Of a stretch of DNA of 64,000 nt, positions 2,561-50,400 are shown in pieces. Under the pieces are notes generated by a model, which did not search any database, was not told where the DNA came from, and was given only the letters and a program-made list of their open reading frames with translations. The stretch lies in contig JALMLS010000466.1 in assembly GCA_038496445.1 (NCBI GenBank), positions 620,001 to 684,000 on the forward strand, in the 5' to 3' direction. Source of the stretch: Trichosphaerium sp. ATCC 40318 (taxonomy: Eukaryota > Protista > Tubulinea). Positions within the stretch are counted from its first letter, which is position 1; each line of letters starts with the position of its first letter. Position numbers and translations under genes: made by a program.

Positions 2561-3489
2561 ATGGAGTCTAATAGAAATCAAAGGTACCAATAGCTACGCG
2601 TATCTAAGTCACTCTTAACGCCTCCAATAGAGCCAAAGTTAGCATTACAGAGTTTCCAGCGGAGATTTTAGCGCATATTTTACTGTATACAACAAAATCG
2701 CGTTATGCGGCTTGTCAGACATGTCATTGCTTCGCTTCTATTGTACATGATATTATAGGATACAAAAATAGCGTTGTAACAGTTAAAACACTTTCTCAAG
2801 CTGAAGCGCTTGTAAAACATTCGGCTTTTCTGAGAAACACAAAGTTTGTTTTAGGTCATACTTTTCCTGCAAGCTCCTTGAAACTATTTGCTGGCGTTCA
2901 CACAATTTATATTTTTGGCATCCCAATAACAGATGAAGGGCTCAAAGCACTTGCAGGCGTTCATACTATAAGCCTTAGAAATACTCCTGTGACAGATGAA
3001 GGAATCAAAGAATTAGCTGGTGTTCATACTATCAATCTTGTTGGCACCTTTGTTAAAGATGAAGGTATTATGGCGCTTGCTGGTGTTCATACTATTGACC
3101 TTAGAGGTACTGAAGTAACAGATGAAGGCATTAAGTCTCTTGCTGGTGTGTATGATATAGACCTTGGTATGACTGCAATCACAGATGAGGGGATAAAGGC
3201 ACTTGCTGGCGTTCACTGTATTAATCTTGATGACACTTCAGTAACAGATGAAGGTCTTAAATCTCTTGCAGGAGTTCATACCATCGGCCTTAAAAATTGT
3301 GAAGAAATAACTGATGAAGGAGTTAAGGCACTTGCTGGTGTTCATACTATCAGTGTTAGTTGCACTGAAATTACAGATGAAGGAATCAAGGCACTTGTTG
3401 GTGTTCATACCATTGACATTACATGTACTGGTGTTACGGATGAAGGAATACAAGCTCTTGTTGATGTATACTCTGTTACATTTGATTGA
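2561..3489 (+). CDS. F-box + leucine-rich repeat protein (LAGVHTIxL..TDEGIK repeats)
   Basis: ATG 2561, phase-2 intron 2584-2630, F-box SITEFPAEILAHILLY..ACQTCHCF in frame with the 2878 ORF, and ~10 repeats of ~21-22 aa. Confidence 0.85.
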
Positions 3490-16144: not shown

Positions 16145-19100
16145 ATGGAGCTCATAGCTTCTAATGCAGAGTGTGTATTCGATTTAACGTCTTTTCGTTA
16201 CAATTGTAGCGTTTACGAGTTTCTTGCAGGTATGCCTTTTCTACGTCGCTTTTTGGCCGTTTTTATCTATACAGTCGCGTCACAGACACTAAATACACGT
16301 CTAGAAATAACAGTTGAAGCACAATTTTCAAATAACGCTAACAGCATCGTAAGAGAGGCAACAGCCACTTTCCCATTGACACAAGGTACGTTGATCGCAA
16401 ACAAACCATGTGAAATAACGAGAAAAAAAGGTGCAATTCTTTACTCTTATGAAATTGATCTCGATGGCTGTATGGTTCCTGCTATTGTCGTTCCTAAAGA
16501 AGATGCCAAAAAAGCTTTTGATATAGGCACGTGTTTTTTTTTTATAATCGAGTATTAGGAGCGGTTTCCTGCTGTTTTTTTCTAACGTTATTTTCATAGA
16601 AACTCATCGAAATACAAGACGTCAGTTGTCAACGCTTGAGTCTGTTCAAGGAAACTTATTCAAGATTAAACTTAATTGGACGAAACCTGGTACAATACGA
16701 ACAGTAAGGCTTCATTGGATAGAAAAGCTTGTCAGGTTAGTACTGTCAACCATAATTCTCCGTACAAACAATATGCTAACAGTTTTGTTTAGAAAGGGAA
16801 ACAATTACGTACTTGACTTGATAGGCAATGATAAAGGCAACTGTGAGATAGACGCAAAAGTGACGAAGTATCATCAAACTATGGATGATTTGGCATTGCC
16901 AATATTGATGACGGGAGACGATGATATGGTTTTTAACTTTGTACCACAGGTACACATACTAATACCCTTACGTTTCCAAGAAGACTATTAACCTGTGTTC
17001 GTACTTAGAATAATTCGTGGATTGGGATTCAAGAATCAACGTTCTGTTTAACAAAGAACGACATGTTGAACGTTCCTTTGTTTCGGTTAGCATTACCATC
17101 AATGACAACATCGATATCAGCACAGAGCGAGAATCTACAAGATAAAACAACTTACTTTTGTGCCTACAACACAATACCAACATCAAAATTTGAGATTCAA
17201 AAGAACGACAAGAAAGAGGGTAAGCCCTATATGTTTATCCTTGTTAATTATTTGTTGTTAGGATTTATTGGTATATCCTGGCCTATCGGTAAGTCATATA
17301 AACAGTATCAAGATGAAGATTTGAGAGTACTACGAACTGTTCTGCATTCAATAAGAGATCAAGCAAAAGGATTCGATTTATTCCTTTATCACGTGCAAGT
17401 TGGAGTAATTCAATCGTTTTCAGCTCATCGCATTAGTGGTATTATCTCGGTACTTACCCTTTTTATCTTATACACCTTTTAATTAACTGTTCAACTACAG
17501 GCGATAAAGAAAAGTCGATGTGATGGTGGTATTGATTTATCAAAGTTAGAGTTTCGAAAAGATCGTTGTGTTGGTTCTTTGAAGACACAGTACTCCTTTC
17601 ATGTACTGTTTAGTGATGGTATATCTACTTTTGGTAATAAGAAAGCTATGTCTGAAGTGATTGAAGCACCAGTGCTTGTTATTACAAACAGGTCAACGAG
17701 CAACATTGTCACTTTGAAGAAGATTGCAACTAAAAGCAGAGGTTTCTTTCTTGATGCAACAAAACTAAGCTTTCAATCTGACTGTGCGTAATGAACTCCT
17801 TTTTCTTCAACATATTTTCGTGTCTTAACCTCTTTTTTATAGTGAGCACTACAATAAACCGATTAAATAGCGATCAAGAAATCTTATTGACAAGGATTGA
17901 TCCTTCAACTTCAAACTCTACAATTAAACGTACGTTTGTTTGTTGTGAGCTTGTACGACCTCTATTGATTAACTTATAGTTTACCCTCAAAAAAGAGCTA
18001 CAGTTTATCCTGAGATGTGGTACGTTGGAAAGATAAAGAATAAAATCAACAGCCAGACAGATAAGATGAATCTAGATGAAGAACAATCAGAACTTACAAT
18101 ACAACTACAGTTTGGTTCTAATGGAGAAAACCTACATAAATCAGAATTTGTGATTAACATTTCACGCTGCAAACAGCTGTTCGATTGCTTACAACGGTAT
18201 TGGATGTATGAGCGCGTTCAAGATATCTTACAGCAACCAGACGTTGATTCAAGAAAGGTACACATAAGAGTTGCTTCGTGATTGAGACCTCGCTTACTTA
18301 CTTTTTTTAAGGATACACTTGTTAGTATTGGTAAAGAGTTTGGTATTCTTTCTCCGTTTACATCATTCATTGTTATGAACTCTCTTGATTTATTCGTCAA
18401 GCATGATATAAGACCTCCTGAGAGTATGGCGGATATTAGAAAAAAGTATGATGATATTATAGAGTCGAAAAAGTTATCAGAGCAAGATGTACTTAGAAGG
18501 AAAATGGAACCACTTCAAGGCTTCTACCAAAGGTACTTTGTGTTTGCATGTTTCGGCTTTTTTTCTTACTTTTGTTCAGGTTGCAAGTACTTTCAACTTC
18601 CGGACCAAGGCAATCCACAACGCAAGAATTGACGTTTATGCCTTATGATGAATCTATCAAAGATACTTATAATAGAAGTTTCTTCAATGCACATGGTCAA
18701 AACTGGAAAAAGTCTAAAAAAAGGAAACAAACATTTGCTATTGAAGACCAACCACATAAGCAAAGACGCTTACTTAGACCTGATGAAGCAGTACCTTTCC
18801 AAAGTATTGGATCCAGATTAATGATGGCGATGGGATGGTCACCAGGAAAAGGCCTTGGAAAGAAAGAACAGGGTGTAACAAAACCATTAGAAGTTAAGCA
18901 CAATCGAAACCTTGGACTTAGTGTTGTAAGAAATGATAAACCAGATGTTGACCCCGTCCCTATGGATATCGAAACAGGTTTATTTACAGAAAAGATACTT
19001 GTCAGTAAGAAGGCTAAAAGAGTAAACTACGTTGGATGTCTATTGGGACCAAGGTAAACTTAACAGCGTAATTTTTTATCCACTTTACTTAACACTTTTT

Positions 19101-21798
19101 AGAGGGTTTACCAAAAAACAAATAGAAGCAGAAACTGGCGCCAAGTTTATCATTAAGGGCACTAGTATGACTAAAGGTTATGGTGATACATGTGACGAAG
19201 CGTATGTCACTGTTACTGGAAAGAGCGAAAATGAGGTTAAAGCTGCTACTCTAAAAATAAAGCAAATATTAGAATCATGTGCTAATGAGGACGCTTCAAT
19301 GAACCTTCACAAACGCCATCAATTAAGACAGCTTGCAGAAATAAATGGAACATTACGACTTGAAAAGCTTCCAGAGCCCAATCATGAGGACTTCGCGCCT
19401 TATATACCACCGCCTCTTATATTAACAAGAGAAGAAAGGAAGAAACTTAGAAAGAAATGCAGAATTGAACAAAGCAAGGAAAGTAGTGATAAAATGGAAC
19501 CAAGAAAGCGCTGTCGTAGAGGAGGTCGTAGATCTAGAAAATTGAAAGAGCGATATTCAAAAACGGAACTAGTACGTTATAAAATAACTAGTAAAGCACT
19601 ATCTTCTCAACAATTTAATTTCCACCTTTAGGAAGCGTTAAAAGGCCAAAGAATTCCTTTTGGGTTAATTGGTTCTACCAATATCACCACCAAAACCACA
19701 AATCAGCATGCCGAAGAAATTGTTGTCACTACTACCAGCCCGTGGGAACAAAAACATGCTGCTTTCGACACCAACACAAATTATTTACATCTTGAACCAA
19801 AACAAATAGACAAAATAATGTACGTACCAATACACCCACGTGATATAAAGAAACTGATATTTCTATTTTAGGAATACTCCACACCAAGGTAAAGACCACA
19901 TTTCAATCAGTGCGTCAGAGTTACGTTTACCATCAAACATACTTGAACACTACATAAAGTACATCAGTGAAGATACAGGCGTTTGTATACTGTATGGGAG
20001 AGTTGAGTACAATACACTTGTAAGGTATATTTGTATACCCAAAATTGATGGCGAGAACCTCGTTATGCCGAGCAACGTAAGAACTGAGACTACTATGAGT
20101 TATTTTCTAATTATTTACTTTATTCTAGGTACCAAAAGAGATGGAGTTTATCGGCCTACTTACAAACGACATGTCTCTTGAAATTGATAGTATCAATAGC
20201 ATTCTTAAACGTACGTTTGGTTACATCTCTACGTTTTTTTAACAGTACAAAAGGAATGGATGTTGAAAATGATATACCCCTTGTTGTTATAAATAACAGT
20301 GCTTACTCGCAATCCATCAAAACATACCTTTTACCAAAGGAGTACGTAATTTTGTTTTCAGAAACTATTTCTTTTTTTAACAAAACTTGTAGTGGTATTG
20401 TAGATGATTCATGGAGGGATTGTGTGAAAAGTGCGATGTCGCAGGTAGTCAATAATGAAAGGGGTTATTTCTTGTACCCTGCAATTACGAAATGGAACGT
20501 ATATGGCGCTCAAGGTGAAGAAGAATATCGCATAGGTACTTTCTACACATTCTCTTTTTTTTCACACGTCATACTAGGTTTCCCAATGCCTGTTGTCAAT
20601 TGTACCGCATGTGCGCCTTTGTCCAAAAATATGAATTTAATGACTAGGAGGTAAAGTTTAAACAAATTTATTGCATTTTATGACACTCTCTTTAGCTTCA
20701 AGTATTGTGTATCGTATCCAACAGCTTGTGGTGCAATTTGCTTTAACAAACAAACCCTCACTCCATATTATGACTATGTTAATGTACAAAACGAAGAAAA
20801 GTCCTTAGATCTATACTACGAAATCTCAAGGCCACTCAACACACCAGACAACGCTTTTTACTTAGTACGTACTACCTGATTAAACGTTTGACTTACTGTA
20901 TTAGGACACGCTTACTTTACTTTCTCAACACCTTTCTCTTGATGAGCAAGTTTGCATCTTATCTAATGTCAGTGCTCAAATAGATAACGTATCCAACATT
21001 GAAGATCAAATTCAGATTGTTGCATGGAAGCTTGAAGAACTAGGACTTTTTGAAGAAGCTATAAAACAATACAAACGACTTAATATGAAAGACCCTTTGG
21101 TTGCATGGGGTTTACTTCATGTACTTCAATCGTCAGATGTTGATCATAGTTATGATATAGTAGCTCTATTGAAAGGTATTATTGAACAAAATCTAGATGA
21201 GAGATTCGCATACAAGGTACACACGTGTTAGCAACAATTATTTTAACCATGGTATGCCTTTAGATTGACGTTTTTTCAATACTGGAGCTTGCAAATATCT
21301 TATGGCACTTGAACACCATGAATGTTGATACAAGAGATTTATATCAATCTATTACTTGTACAAATCCTTTTTTAAGAGATTGTGTATGTTTCCCAATACA
21401 AGTAGACTTGAGGTACTCTATTACACTTTTGCAAAAAAAACTAATAATTTTTTAGGATATCTATCACGTGGAGTTCACCTGCTGACTTGGATTTGATTGT
21501 AACTGAACCAAATGGAGAAAAGTGTTACTCAATGCATAACCAAACATCTAGTGGTGGCCTTCTTGCTGGTACATCAAATTACAAGGGTCCTGAAGAGTAT
21601 GTTATAGGCACAGCACAGAAGGGAATTTATGAGATTCATATTAAATGCGCAAGTGCTATTTCAAAATCGTCAATAGTAGCCTGTCTCAGAGTGTGGAACA
21701 AATATGGCTATGAAAATCAATCAACTTGGACACATGTTCTATGTGTTTCTTCCAAAACCAAAGATACTGTACATGTAGCAAACATATTAATTGATTAA
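16145..21798 (+). CDS. Chimeric VIT-vWA-[G-patch, SF1-type KH-QUA2, Prp3-like helix, Prp8 Jab1/PROCT-like]-TPR-like-DUF2135(YfaP) protein
   Basis: VIT: EATATFPLTQGAILYSYEIDLDGCMVPAIVVPKEDAKKAF. vWA: CDGGIDL, VLFSDGISTFG. Family motif GILSPFTSFIVM..KHDIRPP. G-patch ~18800-18925. KH-QUA2 ~18980-19362. DUF2135: DLRISITWSSPADLDLIVTEPNGEKC..GGLL..GPEEY. The exon junctions I checked are in frame with GT-AG. Confidence 0.8.
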
Positions 21799-22093
21799 TT
21801 AGGCCATGACATTCATCAATTCAAGTACAAGGTTTTAACCTTTTTTAAAATAGAAACCCGTTTGCTTGTTGAGCATGACAATAATGCATTGATCTTTTTA
21901 CAGCTAATAAATTATGTGGTTCAAAATGAAACCTTGCTGGGCAATCAGAAACTATTGGCAAAGAAAGTTTTTTTGATGGAATTTTTGGAAAACAAAAGGG
22001 GTTGTTCAATGATTATTGCAGGTAATATGAGGTTGTCTTTTAAAGTCCATAATGAAGTGGATTGGTTGCATTCTGTTTTATTAACAACAATAA

Positions 22094-22150
22094 GCATGTT
22101 TGGCCGAGTGGTTAAGGCGTACGGTTAAGGTCCGTATGGGATTCGTCCCG
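22094..22150 (+). pseudogene. 3'-truncated copy of tRNA-Leu(AAG)
   Basis: GCATGTTTGGCCGAGTGGTTAAGGCGTACGGTTAAGGTCCGTATGGGATTCGTCCCG is identical to the intact gene, then diverges. The T-arm and 3' acceptor strand are missing. Confidence 0.9.
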
Positions 22151-22805
22151 TGTTCAGGAATGGGTGCAAAATTACCCAAAACAAAAGCTGCATTAACATT
22201 TGAAGCAAAGGTAATTGGAACTTAACGTTGACAGTTCAAGCCACTGTCTTTTAAAACCTCTTAAATTGGCAATATGTTGGAGCTTCCAGCAATTTTGAAA
22301 GATAGAAGTAATAGTGGCAACAATAACTGGTGTTGTATAGCATGAAAGCCACTTACAAAGTGTTAAACCATAAAGGCAAACCCATTCAAGTTTCACTAGC
22401 AGCTATCTTTACTTGAATTTCACTTTAGTGGTTCATTAACATGTGTAATACTATCAATACTTCATTGGTAGAGAACAACAAACCACGATTGAGATTGCAC
22501 TCCATGCACTGTTGAAAAGTAAGCATTGGCATTGTGCACATGTGACCTTGAATAAGTATAAATGCAGAAAAACCTTAATGGTTTTCACATGTTGCCATGC
22601 AGGTTCGACCCCTGTGTTTGGACACATGGCACTAGCCAGGTTCTCTTTGGGGTAATTGGAGTCCTGTGGTGCTAAAACATAGACTAATAAGATCAAAAAT
22701 CAAAACCATACCTTAAACTGTCATGTGAAAATCAAATAGACGCTTGATGTTGATAGTCGCTAATATTCTGGCCACGAAAACTAGCCTATGTAATGCAAAA
22801 AGTAG

Positions 22806-22888
22806 TGCATGCTGCAGGACTTGAACCTGCGCGGGACGAATCCCATACGGACCTTAACCGTACGCCTTAACCACTCGGCCAAACATGC
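22806..22888 (-). tRNA. tRNA-Leu (anticodon AAG)
   Basis: Full cloverleaf: acceptor GCATGTT/AGCATGC+A, D-arm GCCGAGTGGTTAAGGC, anticodon arm TACGG-TTAAGGT-CCGTA, long variable arm GGGATTCGTCCC, T-arm GCAGG-TTCAAGT-CCTGC. Confidence 0.95.
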
Positions 22889-23080
22889 TTATTGTTGTTA
22901 ATAAAACAGAATGCAACCAATCCGCTTCATTATGGACTTTAAAAGACAACCTCATATTACCTGCAATAATCATTGAACAACCCCTTTTGTTTTCCAAAAA
23001 ATTCCATCAAAAAAACTTTCTACCTTTTTGTAAAATGTAACAGCAAGTTTTTGTTTGTTCAAAAAACAATTCTATGTACA

Positions 23081-44413: not shown

Positions 44414-47400
44414 TTAGGATTTTTTTGCAGGTGTGAGAATAAACGAAAAAGTACCTTGCATCACCATTTGCATCAAATTAATTGAGTTCAACGTTGTCCA
44501 AAGCCATCCATTATCGGCAGAAATATCAACCATGGCTTGTAGGATACGTACAGATTGATCAAGTACTGACTTTGTATCAGTGTAGTAATCAGAGATTGGT
44601 AACTGTTCGCTTGCAAAATGTGCTTGGAGCAGCAAAGCAGCTTTAGTATGAGGGCTTTCAAGAGTAAGCATATCAACATCCCAAGGAACTGCATTAGCTA
44701 GAATCTCATTGAGCTTCTCTTCATTATGACGAACAGGAAGTTCAGCATATTCTGGAGCATCTGAAAGCGTCCTCAATAGATCCTAGTAGTAGCGTTCAAT
44801 TAGTCGTTTTTTTTTCTGATTTGTTTTTTTTTGTCTTTTTCGTACCTCTACAGTAGAGTCTTCATCAATCTCGTTATCGAATAACTGTACAGTGGTATAT
44901 TGTAGATAATAATAAGCAGCAATTCGGCCAATTGTAGTGGGCTCAACATCAAAATCATTTTCTATTTCAATACATCCTGCCATCTCCAAGTCTTGGAAAG
45001 TATCATCGATTAGGTCGGATAAGAATTGATTAATAGCTTCTAATTTGACATCTTCAAGTTCATAGTATGTAGGATTCTTTAATAGACGTCTGAAAAAGAA
45101 CGTCCATGTAGCATAATCTATACCATCTTGTTTACTCTTGATTGTACCAGATACAACCTCAGCATTAACGTGATCATGTAAGCATTCACGTAAGCTTGAT
45201 TCAACAGGGAAAGGTTCATAGAGGAACTTTTTGTAAAAGCTCTTCTTCTCGTCTTGTACCATAATCACGGCGAGACCTAAAAATTGGATTAAAGTTTAAC
45301 CTTTGTTGACTTTGAACGCCTTTTTGTTGGTGTTTGGGGTTGTAGAGAACCACATTTATTACTTTTATAGAAGGTACCTTGGTGATCGAATTGAGGACGA
45401 CCTGCACGACCCATCATTTGAAGAATATCAGTGATAGGCATATCAGTATATCTCTTCATCTTTGGATCAAAAAATTCTGTTCCTTTGATGATAACAAGAT
45501 GCGCAGGTAGATTCACACCCCAAGCAAGAGTCGATGTAGATACAAGAAGTTGTATCCATCCTTTAGCAAAAGCGTCTTCAACATGACTCTAAAAGACGAA
45601 GAAAGTAAGCAACCAAACACAAGCTATTGAACAAAAAAAAGAAAAAAACAAAACTCGTACTCTGTCTCCTTTATCAAGACCGGCGTGATGGAGTCCGATA
45701 CCGAACGACAATGAATGTCTTAAGCTCGAGTCTTTGATTTTATCCAACATGAGCTCAAAGTATGGCACTTCGTCATCTTCAACGTGAAGGAACTGTCGAG
45801 GCATTTCGTCAGCGGCTGCAAGACTAATAATATCAACAGCTGTCAAACGTGTTTGCCTTCTTGAAGAAACGAATATGAGGACTGGTTTTCTTGCACTCAT
45901 TGTTCTAATCGCAGCATATGCAGGTTTGTTCATCGTAGCCATTCTCGGGCAATAGAATTTGCCAGCGTAGCCTTGGATGTGTACTTCAAGTGGTACAGGA
46001 CGGACAGATGGTCTGAAGTTGAATAAACCGACTGTGTAGTCAATGCCAAGCCAGTCTGCAAGATCTACAGCGTTCGCTAGAGCTGTTGATAGACCAACAA
46101 TACGTATAGGTGTATTTGTTTGAGAAGAAATGTATCTCATACGAGAAACAATCTAATTAGAGTAAATACAACAATCACGTGCTTGGAAAAAAAAAAAAGA
46201 GTTTTTTGCTTAGCGTACAACTTCAAGAATAGGTCCTCTGTCTTCTCCAAGGAGATGTATCTCATCAATAACTAGTAAAGCGACGTCTTTAACATAACTA
46301 GAATACAATTCAATATTTTACTTGAGCAATTTGTAGTACTGGGTTGTACCTTCTGTTTTGCCAACTACGTGAGATACCATCCCATTTTTCAGGTGTTGTA
46401 ATTACAATATCAGCAGCCTTTAAAGCGCGAATATCAGGCGTGTAATCTCCAGTCAGCTCGAGAGTACTCTTGCCGATCTTGGTAAACTTTTTCCACTCTT
46501 TAACACGCTCTCTGACAATAGCCTTCATAGGAGCAATGTATATTACCTTCACAAACAAAGTAAGTAACAACAGAAACAACCAAAGTCTTGACTCACTTTC
46601 TTGCCTGGCTGGTCTCGGAATAATCTTAGCATAGCAATTTCTGCTACAATAGTCTTTCCTGAACCAGTAGGGGCTCCCATTAGAACATTTTCTGATGTAT
46701 GATACAAAGTGTGGAATGTCTAAGCAAAAATAAGCTCACTTTGTTAACGCAAGCTAGAAGTGCTGAGGAGAGTATTTTCCTCTGCTGGTTTACTGTGCGA
46801 CGTGCCTGTGTTTGGATAGGATTAAAGTGTGAGAAAGGGTAGATGGCTTCAAACTTTGGGTTATGCAACGACTTGATTGGTAGAGGTTGCAAGTTGAGAA
46901 GAGGTGTATGAGGTGGATATTTTTCAGGTAAGATGAGATGTTGAAATGACAAAGGAATCATCTCTTCACAACCAAGCCAACGATCAGAAATAGCGTGGAT
47001 ATAATAATTAGAAGGCATAGGATCAGTGAATATTGGAATAACAAATGTAAGTTTCTGAGGTTCATTAACTTGTTTCTGATGAAGCAAAAAGTATTCGCTG
47101 TGGTATATATGTTCGTTATCAGCATCCTCTACCCAAATCCAGAATGGTTGTCCAGTACCTTTAAAACAGAAGTCAGTACAAAAGACACGATTACAATGAG
47201 GCTATAATATGAAGGCTTACCGTGAACGCGTTCATCCCACTCAAATAGAGCCTCAATAGTAAGTTGTACACGTAATACAGTACGTGTAATAGGTTGTACA
47301 GTAGCTGTCAATTCCAATGTTGGAAACTTACGTACAGCACTAACAACACGTTGACCAGATGTTTTATTATGGTGGATAAGAGCGCTTATATCTGAAGCTG

Positions 47401-50400
47401 TCATATCACGTAACTTATCTAAACCCACCTTAAAGAAAAAGTCAGAAAAAAATAGGATTATGTAAGTTTACCTTTTTCTCTTCTAGTCGCTTAAGAACTG
47501 CTTCCGGAAGTGAATGCATTTGCCTTAGTGGATGATGGTATGTCCATAGTTGATGATCAACCATTTTACAGAAATTAAGAAGCTTAGAGCCAAGGATAGT
47601 AAAATTTTGCTTAATAGCAATCTCGAACATTGCTCTGAATATCCTACCAGCATTTTGTGCAACGTAGTTACAATCAGAAACCAGGGAGAATGTTTTAATA
47701 GACCACCGAGAAATAAACGCCTGAATAAGAACGTCTAAAACATCATTAGAGTCGAGCATGTAGCGTGGGAAAGTAGGTAGGTACTTGTTTTGCCAGTTTT
47801 ATCTTCAGAGCCTCCTTTTACACTTAAAGGACAACAATAAGGTGAATCAGCTTCTATCATTTCATCAAGCTCTTTCAGTTCGTCATCTCTCAGATTTACA
47901 TTATCAAACTCTGAGCACTAAAGAAGAAAGCTTGTTAGTTTTTGGAGAAGGTAAAGGAGGGTTATAATGCGTACTCTTGATACTGCTGTGATGACATCAA
48001 CATCTGACATTGTACCCTTTATTGATTCATTAAACATTCTCATTGTTTCATGCTTAATGTAGTAATGAGAGGCAATACGACCCAAATCAGTGGAGTAAAG
48101 ATTTCCTGATTTTTCATCAAATCGAATCATTTTGCATTCATCCAGAGTCTTACAGGCTCTGACAACGTCCTCTGATCTTCTGTTTATTAAAGCAGGATCA
48201 TTCGTCTACATAAAATACTTAGCCACAACACACAAAAGGCAACAGCTGAGCTAGAAAAGAAATAAAAGGGTTGATGTGACTTACCTTTTCATTGAATGAG
48301 ATACCATACGCAAGCGCATTCTTCTTCATCCGTGTGTACAAGTAAGTGTATGATAACCACTGTACTGCTTCACGAACGCTCGATACTGTACCCAAAACAA
48401 TCTCTGCATTGAGTTGATCTTCAACACGTTTGATAAATTGACTTTCAATCGGTAACTGGTGATTAAGAAGTCTTAGATAATGTTTGAGCTTATCATGTTC
48501 TGTTATAATAACAGCGTCACCAGACGTATCATACTGTGGACGACCAGCACGACCAAAAATCTGCATGACATCAAGCATACCAAGGTCTACAAACTGACCA
48601 GCCTCAGAGTTATACAACTGAGTTCCTTTGATTATTACTGTATGAGCTGGAAGATTCACACCCCAAGCAAGAGTTGCAGTACAGCATAGCACTTTAATCA
48701 TACCCTCGCGGAACAATTTCTCGACTTGAGTACGATCCTTCCTTAGCATACCAGCGTGATGGCAACCGAATCCTCCTCTGAAGAGTTCCTTCAAAGCCCT
48801 ATCTCTTGATTTGTCTACAGACTTCGCAGCAAGTCTGTAACGTTGTGTAGCTTCAGGCATGAACGCCTTTCCGTCTCCTGATTCTTTAGCCATCTCGATC
48901 ATAGTTTTCGCTGTTCCTGCAGTATCTTTTCTTGAGTGAACGAAGATAAGCACTTGGTTTCCTTTTTTAACAGACTCCAGTGCTTTTTCATAAGCGACTT
49001 CAACTTGTCTGCTCTTAATGTCTAGAATATTCTTTCCTTTTACACCAATGTACGTTTGATCAAGAGGTACAGGTCTGTATGATGAATCAAAGTAGAAACA
49101 TCCCTTAACTGGGTTTACACGCAAGAACTCTGCAACATCTTGGTAATTTGGTAAAGTAGCAGAAAGACCAACAATACGAATCATTGTTTGTGTTTGCTCA
49201 ACCTGTAAACAAAGAATAAGTACAGCTCAGAATAAAACTCGTGTGTGTTAGTCTAATTGACGTACAAGCCTTAGAGTTCTTGCTACGATACTCTCAATAA
49301 CAGGTCCTCTGTCTTCATGCAAAAGATGGACTTCATCAATAATAAGAAGCTTAACAACTGATGTTAAAGCAATATCAGTGCTTTTTCTTGTTATAACATC
49401 CCATTTTTCTGGTGTTGTAACAATGACTTGTGTTGCCGTTAATTCTTTCTTTGTAAGCTGCATATCACCAGTACATTCCTTAACAACTATACCCAAAGGT
49501 CCTAAACGCTTAGAAAAACTACGTGTCATCTCAGCAGCGAGAGCTTTCATTGGAGCAACGTATATTATTTTGAAAGCTTCTTTATGAAGTATACCACCTC
49601 GAATGTTCTTGCCAATTTCATGAAGCATAGTCATAACTGCTACGTTTGTTTTACCAGCACCAGTAGGCGCACAAATAAGCAAGTTCTCATTTGTCTTATA
49701 AGCTGAGTGATAGACTTTGGATTGAATTCTGTTAAGTCGCTCATATCCTTGAAAAGCAAGTTGAGCGAACTCTTCAAATTCTGATATTGGTATCAAGTCT
49801 TCTTTTTTAAGAGGTGGTGGTTGTTTTGCTGGAATATAAACGGATTCGTATTCCTTGAGGTTCGTGCGTATAGCGCCTTAATTAAAGTTAATAAAAATCA
49901 CAAAAAGAAAAAGTAATATTAAACTGATGAACGAATATATTCCGCTTACCATCAGGTGTACCACCATTTTCTGCTAGTCTAGGAGCAGCGGCAAGGTGAT
50001 AAAATGGGAGCGGTTCTTTTGGTGCAACCATATAATTATCCCCAGCAAGATTTCTAAAAAACAATGGGTTACAACAATTAAAACCAAAGGAAACTTTTTG
50101 ACACAAAAAAAAAAGACGAACCCTTGTGCTTGTCCGTAGGAATTTTTACCCTTTCTACGTCGCTGGTTTTTCTTTTCTAGTTTTGATAGGAGCTTATCTG
50201 TCTTTGTTACAATAGTGACCTACACTCATTGTCAAAAATCAACCCATAAAACTGCTTCGTACACCTGGGCCAAAATCTGGACCTCTTGTTGGTGCGCCAC
50301 GCAAATTCAAGCTGACAAGCTCATATCTATGTGAAATCATTGTACGTATAAACCCAATATGTTGAGGCCCAAGCAGATCCATTAAATTCTCGCTTACTTG

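Follow-up and report, generated by a model that had tools for sequence, protein, structure and literature searches.

The question raised by the gene at 16145-21798 on the forward strand of contig JALMLS010000466.1 of Trichosphaerium sp. ATCC 40318 (the window is the whole 64,000-nucleotide stretch analyzed here, positions 620,001 to 684,000 of the contig) is how a protein with a bacterial-type scaffold came to carry pieces of the splicing machinery, and what they could do there. A sequence-only reading of this DNA had proposed a single gene with VIT-vWA and TPR-DUF2135 ends and spliceosome-derived modules in the linker between them. The data reported here support this architecture, which we assign with high confidence: the predicted gene gives an open frame of 1530 amino acids, its relatives are collinear with it, and the connector of the VIT-vWA...TPR-DUF2135 scaffold holds the spliceosome-derived pieces.

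Curated exon chaining placed the start codon at 16145 and the stop codon at 21796-98, and predicted from the genomic sequence one intron-rich gene, in which 21 introns of 40-73 nucleotides (nt) separate 22 exons without any in-frame stop codon. The exons defined by this chaining are the following.

16145-16229, 16275-16526, 16600-16735, 16793-16949, forward strand: exons 1-4
17009-17219, 17262-17449, 17501-17783, 17843-17929, forward strand: exons 5-8
17980-18257, 18312-18532, 18580-19053, 19103-19571, forward strand: exons 9-12
19632-19819, 19872-20076, 20129-20210, 20254-20341, forward strand: exons 13-16
20393-20535, 20578-20650, 20696-20864, 20905-21216, forward strand: exons 17-20
21264-21412, 21456-21798, forward strand: exons 21-22

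The intron donors were of the GTA type, apart from one GC-AG intron (16527-16599, donor GCACGT), which is required for the reading frame of the VIT domain. Most introns contained a branch-like motif (TTAAC, CTAAC or CTTAC) located 8-15 nt upstream of the AG. In the introns 16736-16792 and 20211-20253 the CAG lying directly on this motif appears to be skipped and the next AG, ~10 nt downstream, to be used, and in the intron 20342-20392, which has the same TTTTTTTAAC motif, the AG was ~11 nt further on. This skipping rule resolved the single frame problem of the model, at 20211, and the rule, which applies near the (T)nAAC/CTAAC motif, helps gene modeling in this genome. Alignment with relatives suggests an additional in-frame intron with a perfect GTACGT donor at 16386-16430, which would bring the gene to 23 exons and the protein to 1515 residues.

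The Pfam, PDB and structure-prediction queries for the window protein were run exon by exon on unspliced DNA. Neither the protein nor a close orthologue was found in a library of 1.8 billion representative proteins, where the best match was that of exon 12 (expectation value, E, 3e-8). Two relatives were recovered as full-length cluster members of those VIT-vWA library matches that carry an SF1-type KH-QUA2 domain. One of them, P0084, is a 1319-residue protein of Rhizamoeba saxonica (EP01130 P004599), known from a Trinity transcript, and the other, P0087, is a eukaryotic protein of 1353 residues encoded on a 497-kb contig of ERZ21831265; both have the SF1 KH-QUA2 at the same site as the window protein. 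BLAST of the window protein against these two gave collinear matches at the N-terminal module, the KH domain and the C-terminal module. The N-terminal module consists of three parts.

16202..16733, forward strand: VIT domain (about residues 20-157), from Pfam PF08487 and alignment with the VIT domains of P0084 and P0087
17219..17782, forward strand: vWA-like domain with a degenerate MIDAS (metal-ion-dependent adhesion site), from sequence alignment to P0084, P0087 and relatives in bacteria
18312..18530, forward strand: end of the N-terminal module, namely the SPFTSFIV strand completing the VIT sandwich and a helix, from alignment, named as in PMC10539598

The VIT domain was recognized by PF08487 on exon 2 alone (28.7 bits, cut-off 26.5), while Pfam gave no vWA match on single exons, and the NCBIfam matches, mostly to the VIT domain, were all far below threshold. 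The N-terminal 600 residues were collinear with those of P0084 and P0087, in an alignment that took in the GG.D and F(S/T)DG motifs as well as the strand SPFTSFIV; the BLAST alignment to P0087 spanned residues 64-618, and the bacterial protein P0095 could be aligned up to residue 590. In the alignment the MIDAS of the window protein reads PxGxS in place of DxSxS and has isoleucine for the MIDAS threonine, so that the aspartate and the first serine of DxSxS are lost and only the later aspartate is retained, whereas P0087 keeps every MIDAS residue. No signal-peptide-like N-terminus was seen in the sequence of the window protein.

The C-terminal end of the protein is made of two further modules.

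20905..21456, forward strand: TPR-like helical module (residues 1264-1417), from homology to P0084 and P0087
21457..21795, forward strand: DUF2135-fold beta-sandwich (residues 1418-1530), from an AlphaFold2 model

The BLAST match to the C-terminal modules of P0084 and P0087 started at residue 1299. Pfam gave no TPR match on exons 20-21; weak Pfam TPR matches were obtained for P0087 in the stretch homologous to these exons, and TPR matches for P0095 at the equivalent position. The model of exon 22 (pLDDT, the predicted local distance difference test, 79.6) superimposed with TM-scores of 0.83-0.86 over 110-112 residues on clusters of PF09906 (DUF2135), which include bacterial VIT+DUF2135 proteins of 866-1015 residues, and its Atlas features for DUF2135 scored 0.95. 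Pfam, whose DUF2135 model has 48 positions only, found no match on this last exon, and Foldseek of the model against the PDB returned only generic Ig-like sandwiches with E values of 0.1 or higher. The predicted structure indicates that the last exon encodes a DUF2135 fold.

The order of these modules is the same as in bacterial VIT-vWA-TPR-DUF2135 proteins, such as P0095 (a "DUF2135 domain-containing protein" of Pirellulales), P0103 (Kiritimatiellia) and P0110 (Tamlana). A search with the N-terminal module of P0087 returned ~20 VIT+DUF2135 proteins from bacteria, 943-1150 residues long, with E values down to 1e-51 and 24-31% identity over ~95% of the module length; a profile search with the alignment of P0084 and P0087 returned P0033 only. 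Between aligned module ends the connector was 118-244 residues long in 21 bacterial relatives. Compared with these proteins, the window gene adds ~630 residues of eukaryotic cargo and spliceosomal introns, and has lost the MIDAS. Hence, the window protein is an amoebozoan member of an otherwise mostly bacterial VIT-vWA-TPR-DUF2135 family. The same scaffold, with a connector of normal length and with ZZ zinc fingers C-terminal of the DUF2135 module, was also seen in P0104 from the rotifers Rotaria magnacalcarata and R. socialis (20 cluster members). The cytoplasmic VIT-vWA proteins Vwa1-7 of Dictyostelium and human VWA5A, in which a strand after the vWA domain completes the VIT sandwich and the C-terminal region is variable (PMC10539598), differ from the window protein in that no TPR-DUF2135 end or captured host fragments are described for them; they are set apart by description only. 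The sequence-only reading had known of no described protein with such an architecture, and none was found in the literature searched (DUF2135; VIT/vWA/YfaP; integrated decoy/amoeba/vWA).

The cargo begins at the exon directly after the end of the N-terminal module and comprises residues 633-1263, encoded by the nine exons 11-19, that is ~630 codons without a stop. The following parts were distinguished in it.

18791..18928, forward strand: G-patch with the full glycine pattern (residues 704-749), from PF01585 and PDB searches
18977..19364, forward strand: SF1/BBP-type KH-QUA2 (residues 766-878), from PDB and library searches, with the intron 19054-19102 inside the GPRG loop
19389..19493, forward strand: Prp3-like basic peptide (residues 887-921), from positions 128-163 of PF08572, below cut-off
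19503..19676, forward strand: Prp31 C-terminal-like peptide (residues 925-962), from PF09785, spanning the intron 19572-19631
19677..20001, forward strand: Prp8-derived segment, the linker before the Jab1/MPN domain and the first elements of that domain (residues 963-1053), from PDB searches, a custom profile and hhalign
20002..20579, forward strand: possible eroded rest of Jab1/MPN (residues 1054-1183), from in-order hhalign
20580..20864, forward strand: cysteine-rich stretch (residues 1184-1263), without Pfam or PDB match

The G-patch of ~45 residues was matched by PF01585 with 51.7 bits (E 8e-14), and all its PDB matches were G-patch proteins, including RBM5, NKRF, TFIP11, SUGP1, Spp382 and GPKOW; a PDB search of the stretch upstream of it gave nothing. 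The top PDB match of the KH-QUA2 was SF1 (1k1g, E 3e-4), with the alignment continuing through the NGTLR motif of QUA2, and the search of the 1.8-billion library returned 83 matches with E ≤ 0.001 (best 3e-8), of which those inspected were SF1-like proteins or KH-bearing VIT-vWA relatives. As in SF1/BBP, the KH domain has a GPRG loop and is followed by the QUA2 helix, with the best identity of 42% to SF1-like proteins. In contrast to SF1/BBP, the window protein has the KH-QUA2 only, with a shortened variable loop and a very long branch, and lacks the zinc knuckles and the U2AF-binding N-terminus. In the KH tree the branch of the window KH was 2.79 long compared with a median of 0.32, and its rate of change is therefore far above that of true SF1. 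The glycine pattern of the G-patch and the GPRG loop of the KH domain are both intact.

The pieces that follow are shorter or less complete. The Prp3-like peptide covers 36 of the 220 positions of the PF08572 profile and reached 22.4 bits (E 1e-4), where the cut-off is 31.4, without any PDB match. The adjoining Prp31-like peptide, which was absent from the module list of the sequence-only reading and is a weak assignment, reached 17 bits with PF09785 (E 0.011, cut-off 25.2) in a match clipped by the exon end; its top PDB match, obtained with a query clipped in the same way, was human Prp31 350-371 (E 0.32). The Prp8-derived segment was better defined, as exon 13 alone matched four PDB chains, all of them Prp8 (best E 4.7e-5). 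Since Pfam and PDB searches of exons 14-18 gave no Prp8, a custom profile was built from 49 C-termini of real Prp8 genes, which were taken from metagenome contigs via a conserved motif. This profile matched residues 963-1046 with 23.3 bits (E 1.2e-9 in a one-sequence search), and hhalign to Prp8 was collinear over 227 columns with a probability of 96.2%, while the hmmalign alignment ended after the first elements of Jab1/MPN. The continuation in residues 1054-1183 aligned by hhalign with 24% identity over 148 columns (E 0.067 when taken alone) and had a weak Atlas lead to JAB/UPF0172 (0.90). With HMMER the MPN core alone scored 1.0 bits, less than the maximum of 6.3 among shuffled sequences, and was not significant. 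Pfam found no JAB, PROCT or TPR on exons 13-21, and PDB searches of exon 14 and of exons 16-18 (with in-frame introns retained) gave no Prp8.

Taken together, the sequence comparisons indicate that the cargo is made of abutting pieces of at least five RNA-splicing proteins, of which the Prp3 piece is borderline and the Prp31 piece weak. Three of the four modules named by the sequence-only reading were thus recovered by profile or structure searches: the G-patch and the SF1/BBP KH-QUA2 as proposed, and the Prp8 C-terminal region as far as the linker and the first Jab1/MPN elements, with the MPN core lacking significance by itself. The fourth, the Prp3-like helix, is borderline. The pieces share exons: exon 11 encodes the G-patch together with one half of KH, exon 12 encodes the other half, then QUA2 and the pieces of Prp3 and Prp31, and exon 13 holds the tail of the Prp31 piece and the linker of Prp8. 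Because fragments of different parents are found within single exons, the mosaic is a property of continuous open reading frames, and is independent of splice prediction.

Enlarged connectors were also found in the amoebozoan relatives, which have the same scaffold as the window protein and differ from it in the remaining cargo, as the sequence-only reading had proposed to check. The amoebozoan connectors were 481, 507, 744 (the window gene, with the cargo accounting for ~630 residues) and 1118 residues long. Within the cargo the KH-QUA2 is the sole part common to the window protein, P0084 and P0087. Right after it, at residues ~745-790, P0084 has a Cdc5/Cef1 fragment (E 2e-7), for which all 12 PDB matches were Cdc5 in spliceosome structures; a Prp31-like origin of this basic stretch was considered and was ruled out by the same PDB search. 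By eye an RS-rich stretch was also seen in P0084, and P0087 has an RGG stretch. The 2000-residue protein P0097 of Arcella intermedia (EP01124 P021407, from a transcriptome assembly), which has the 1118-residue connector, contains ubiquitin at residues 1512-1585 (82-86 bits), and the other ~1000 residues of its connector had no Pfam match. None of the G-patch, Prp3, Prp31 and Prp8 pieces was present in P0084, P0087 or P0097. The window protein and P0084 were sisters in the scaffold tree (approximate likelihood-ratio test, aLRT, 93), and so were their KH domains in the KH tree (aLRT 92), which suggests that they represent an old, retained spliceosome-themed member of the family.

To account for these features we tentatively propose that the scaffold presents spliceosome surfaces as mimics, an explanation that we consider possible though short of probable. 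The scaffold would serve as a display frame for docking surfaces and peptides that mimic real spliceosome parts, and those molecules that bind or modify the real parts would be captured by the window protein, or would act on it, instead. The molecules concerned could be a DEAH helicase docking on the G-patch, branch-point RNA bound by the KH-QUA2, tri-snRNP (small nuclear ribonucleoprotein) partners, or a foreign effector aimed at any of them. Such a bait or decoy role is favored over that of an adaptor or of a working splicing factor because the pieces are fragmentary, because the fold cores are eroded with short surface motifs kept, and because the same site of the relatives carries pieces of other proteins, even though the roles are inferred and sequence by itself cannot decide between them. 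The erosion is seen in the very long KH branch and in the contrast between the Prp8 linker, which is highly similar, and the MPN core, which is undetectable alone; the motifs kept are the glycine pattern of the G-patch and the GPRG loop. The spliceosome theme recurs in the Rhizamoeba protein with a different fragment, with other cargo in Arcella.

Plant NLR (nucleotide-binding leucine-rich-repeat) proteins with integrated decoys have a piece of a host target protein built into another protein. The window protein could share this principle, and it differs from them in having several fragments in series and no NB-ARC or TIR. In a broader version, which we regard as unlikely, Amoebozoa would have turned the bacterial scaffold into a family of integrated-decoy display frames, which would intercept effectors of intracellular bacteria or giant viruses or report their presence. 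The fragments in each member would come from a single essential machine of the host, the spliceosome in the window protein and in Rhizamoeba, and ubiquitin in Arcella. In nature, amoebae serve as hosts to Legionella-like bacteria and to giant viruses.

Several observations weigh against the mimic-display proposal. No signaling, executioner or oligomerizing domain (NB-ARC, TIR or similar) was found by Pfam on any exon, so the protein would be a sensor without a visible output, and no PADLOC defense-family match was obtained for P0084, P0087 and the two window-protein exons scanned. As the MIDAS is lost, the only bait mechanism documented for a VIT-vWA protein cannot operate here in its known form. 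The retention of the KH-QUA2 in three distant amoebae suits a conserved cellular role equally well. The matches to Prp3 and Prp31, which are short, basic and similar to nuclear localization signals, could be convergent. Both sister groupings, in the scaffold and KH trees, join long branches and may be artefacts, and the gene model is derived from genomic sequence alone.

A conserved cellular role could be that of an adaptor or hub, in which the scaffold is a protein-binding platform and the cargo recruits real spliceosome partners so as to regulate or sequester them, or to have unassembled subunits removed in a ubiquitin-dependent way. The G-patch could recruit a DEAH helicase, Jab1/MPN could recruit Brr2, and the KH-QUA2 could recruit RNA. 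The intact signatures of the G-patch and of the KH GPRG loop and QUA2 fit this role, as does the KH-QUA2 itself, which three divergent proteins of amoebozoan type have long retained at one and the same site. There is also a precedent in Vwa1 of Dictyostelium, which associates with FbxwD, an SCF F-box protein, and has been proposed to be a binding hub (PMC10539598), and the Arcella relative carries ubiquitin. However, the MPN core, which would be expected to bind Brr2, is eroded, the Prp3 and Prp31 pieces are only ~35 residues long, the cargo of the three relatives is wholly different apart from the KH-QUA2, and the F-box or ligase link is that of Vwa1, which makes this role rather doubtful. 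The variation of cargo length and content among relatives, the very long KH branch, the eroded MPN domain and the stretches without assignment could also be explained if the connector simply tolerated insertions, so that exon shuffling left non-functional debris of host genes and the scaffold alone was under selection. Such a neutral mosaic would hardly be expected to keep ~630 stop-free cargo codons in nine exons with intact splice sites, a G-patch scoring 51.7 bits and a near-consensus Prp8 linker, or to show the spliceosome theme again, with Cdc5, in the Rhizamoeba relative, and we consider it improbable.

Two further explanations are less probable still. The sequence-only reading had drawn an analogy to ITIH4, in which the VIT-vWA module is followed by a bait region, and in which MIDAS mutations abolish complex formation (PMC7793589). 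By this analogy the cargo would be a protease-susceptible bait, and the cut protein would clamp the protease via its vWA domain. The VIT-vWA module is shared, and in ITIH4 it is followed by an exposed region acting as bait, as would be the case here, but ITIH4 is secreted and MIDAS-dependent, and its bait is a protease-susceptible stretch, not copies of other proteins (PMC7793589). The analogy is weakened by the loss in the window protein of the aspartate and first serine of DxSxS and of the MIDAS threonine, that is of the site required for trapping by ITIH4 (PMC7793589), and also by the lack of a signal-peptide-like N-terminus, as read from the sequence, and of a PADLOC match, which leaves a protease trap very improbable. 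Finally, two or three neighboring genes, or a mis-assembly, could have been fused artificially by reading through predicted introns, as the joins between scaffold and cargo depend on the predicted introns 18533-18579 and 20865-20904. Without these introns, however, a gene end would lie only 8 nt before the next possible start, compared with an upstream spacer in the window of ~190 nt, and in Rhizamoeba the parts follow one another in the same order on a single transcript. The composition is also uniform, with third-position GC contents (GC3) of 0.315 in the scaffold and 0.32 in the cargo, and no internal repeats were found in the gene, including at the joins. We therefore give an artefact the lowest probability of all.

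Whether it displays mimics or acts as an adaptor, the window gene shows clearly how a scaffold of bacterial type has gained eukaryotic exons at one defined site, and together with its relatives with other cargo it represents a protein architecture of amoebae that is undescribed in the literature searched. Provided that the cargo is functional, it offers a compact natural set of those spliceosome docking surfaces that are important enough to be copied and retained, with a helicase-activating G-patch, a branch-point reader and tri-snRNP peptides. If the decoy explanation is true, the family would list host targets of amoeba pathogens and would add a second case of integrated decoys to those known in the immunity of eukaryotes; in its family-wide form, the integrated-decoy principle would have been invented independently outside plant NLRs, and the cargo of each member would indicate the target of an effector. 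If instead the adaptor explanation is true, it would point to a new layer of spliceosome control or to subunit quality control.

Other features were noted elsewhere in the window. An inverted repeat with 183-nt arms (21968-22150 and 22832-23014, 96% complementary, 681 nt apart) begins 170 nt past the stop codon of the gene, and the region 21968-23014 may be a foldback or terminal-inverted-repeat element. On the reverse strand, 45589-49796 has long exons of a dual-cassette Ski2-like helicase, an RNA helicase that seems closer to ASCC3/Slh1 than to Brr2; it had been considered as a possible Brr2 partner of the window protein, and was dropped as probably ASCC3-like and without relation to the cargo gene. 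Upstream of the gene, on the forward strand, two long frames at 1552-2265 and 2878-3489 resemble by eye a repeat protein of the MORN type and a leucine-rich-repeat protein whose units recur regularly every ~23 residues.

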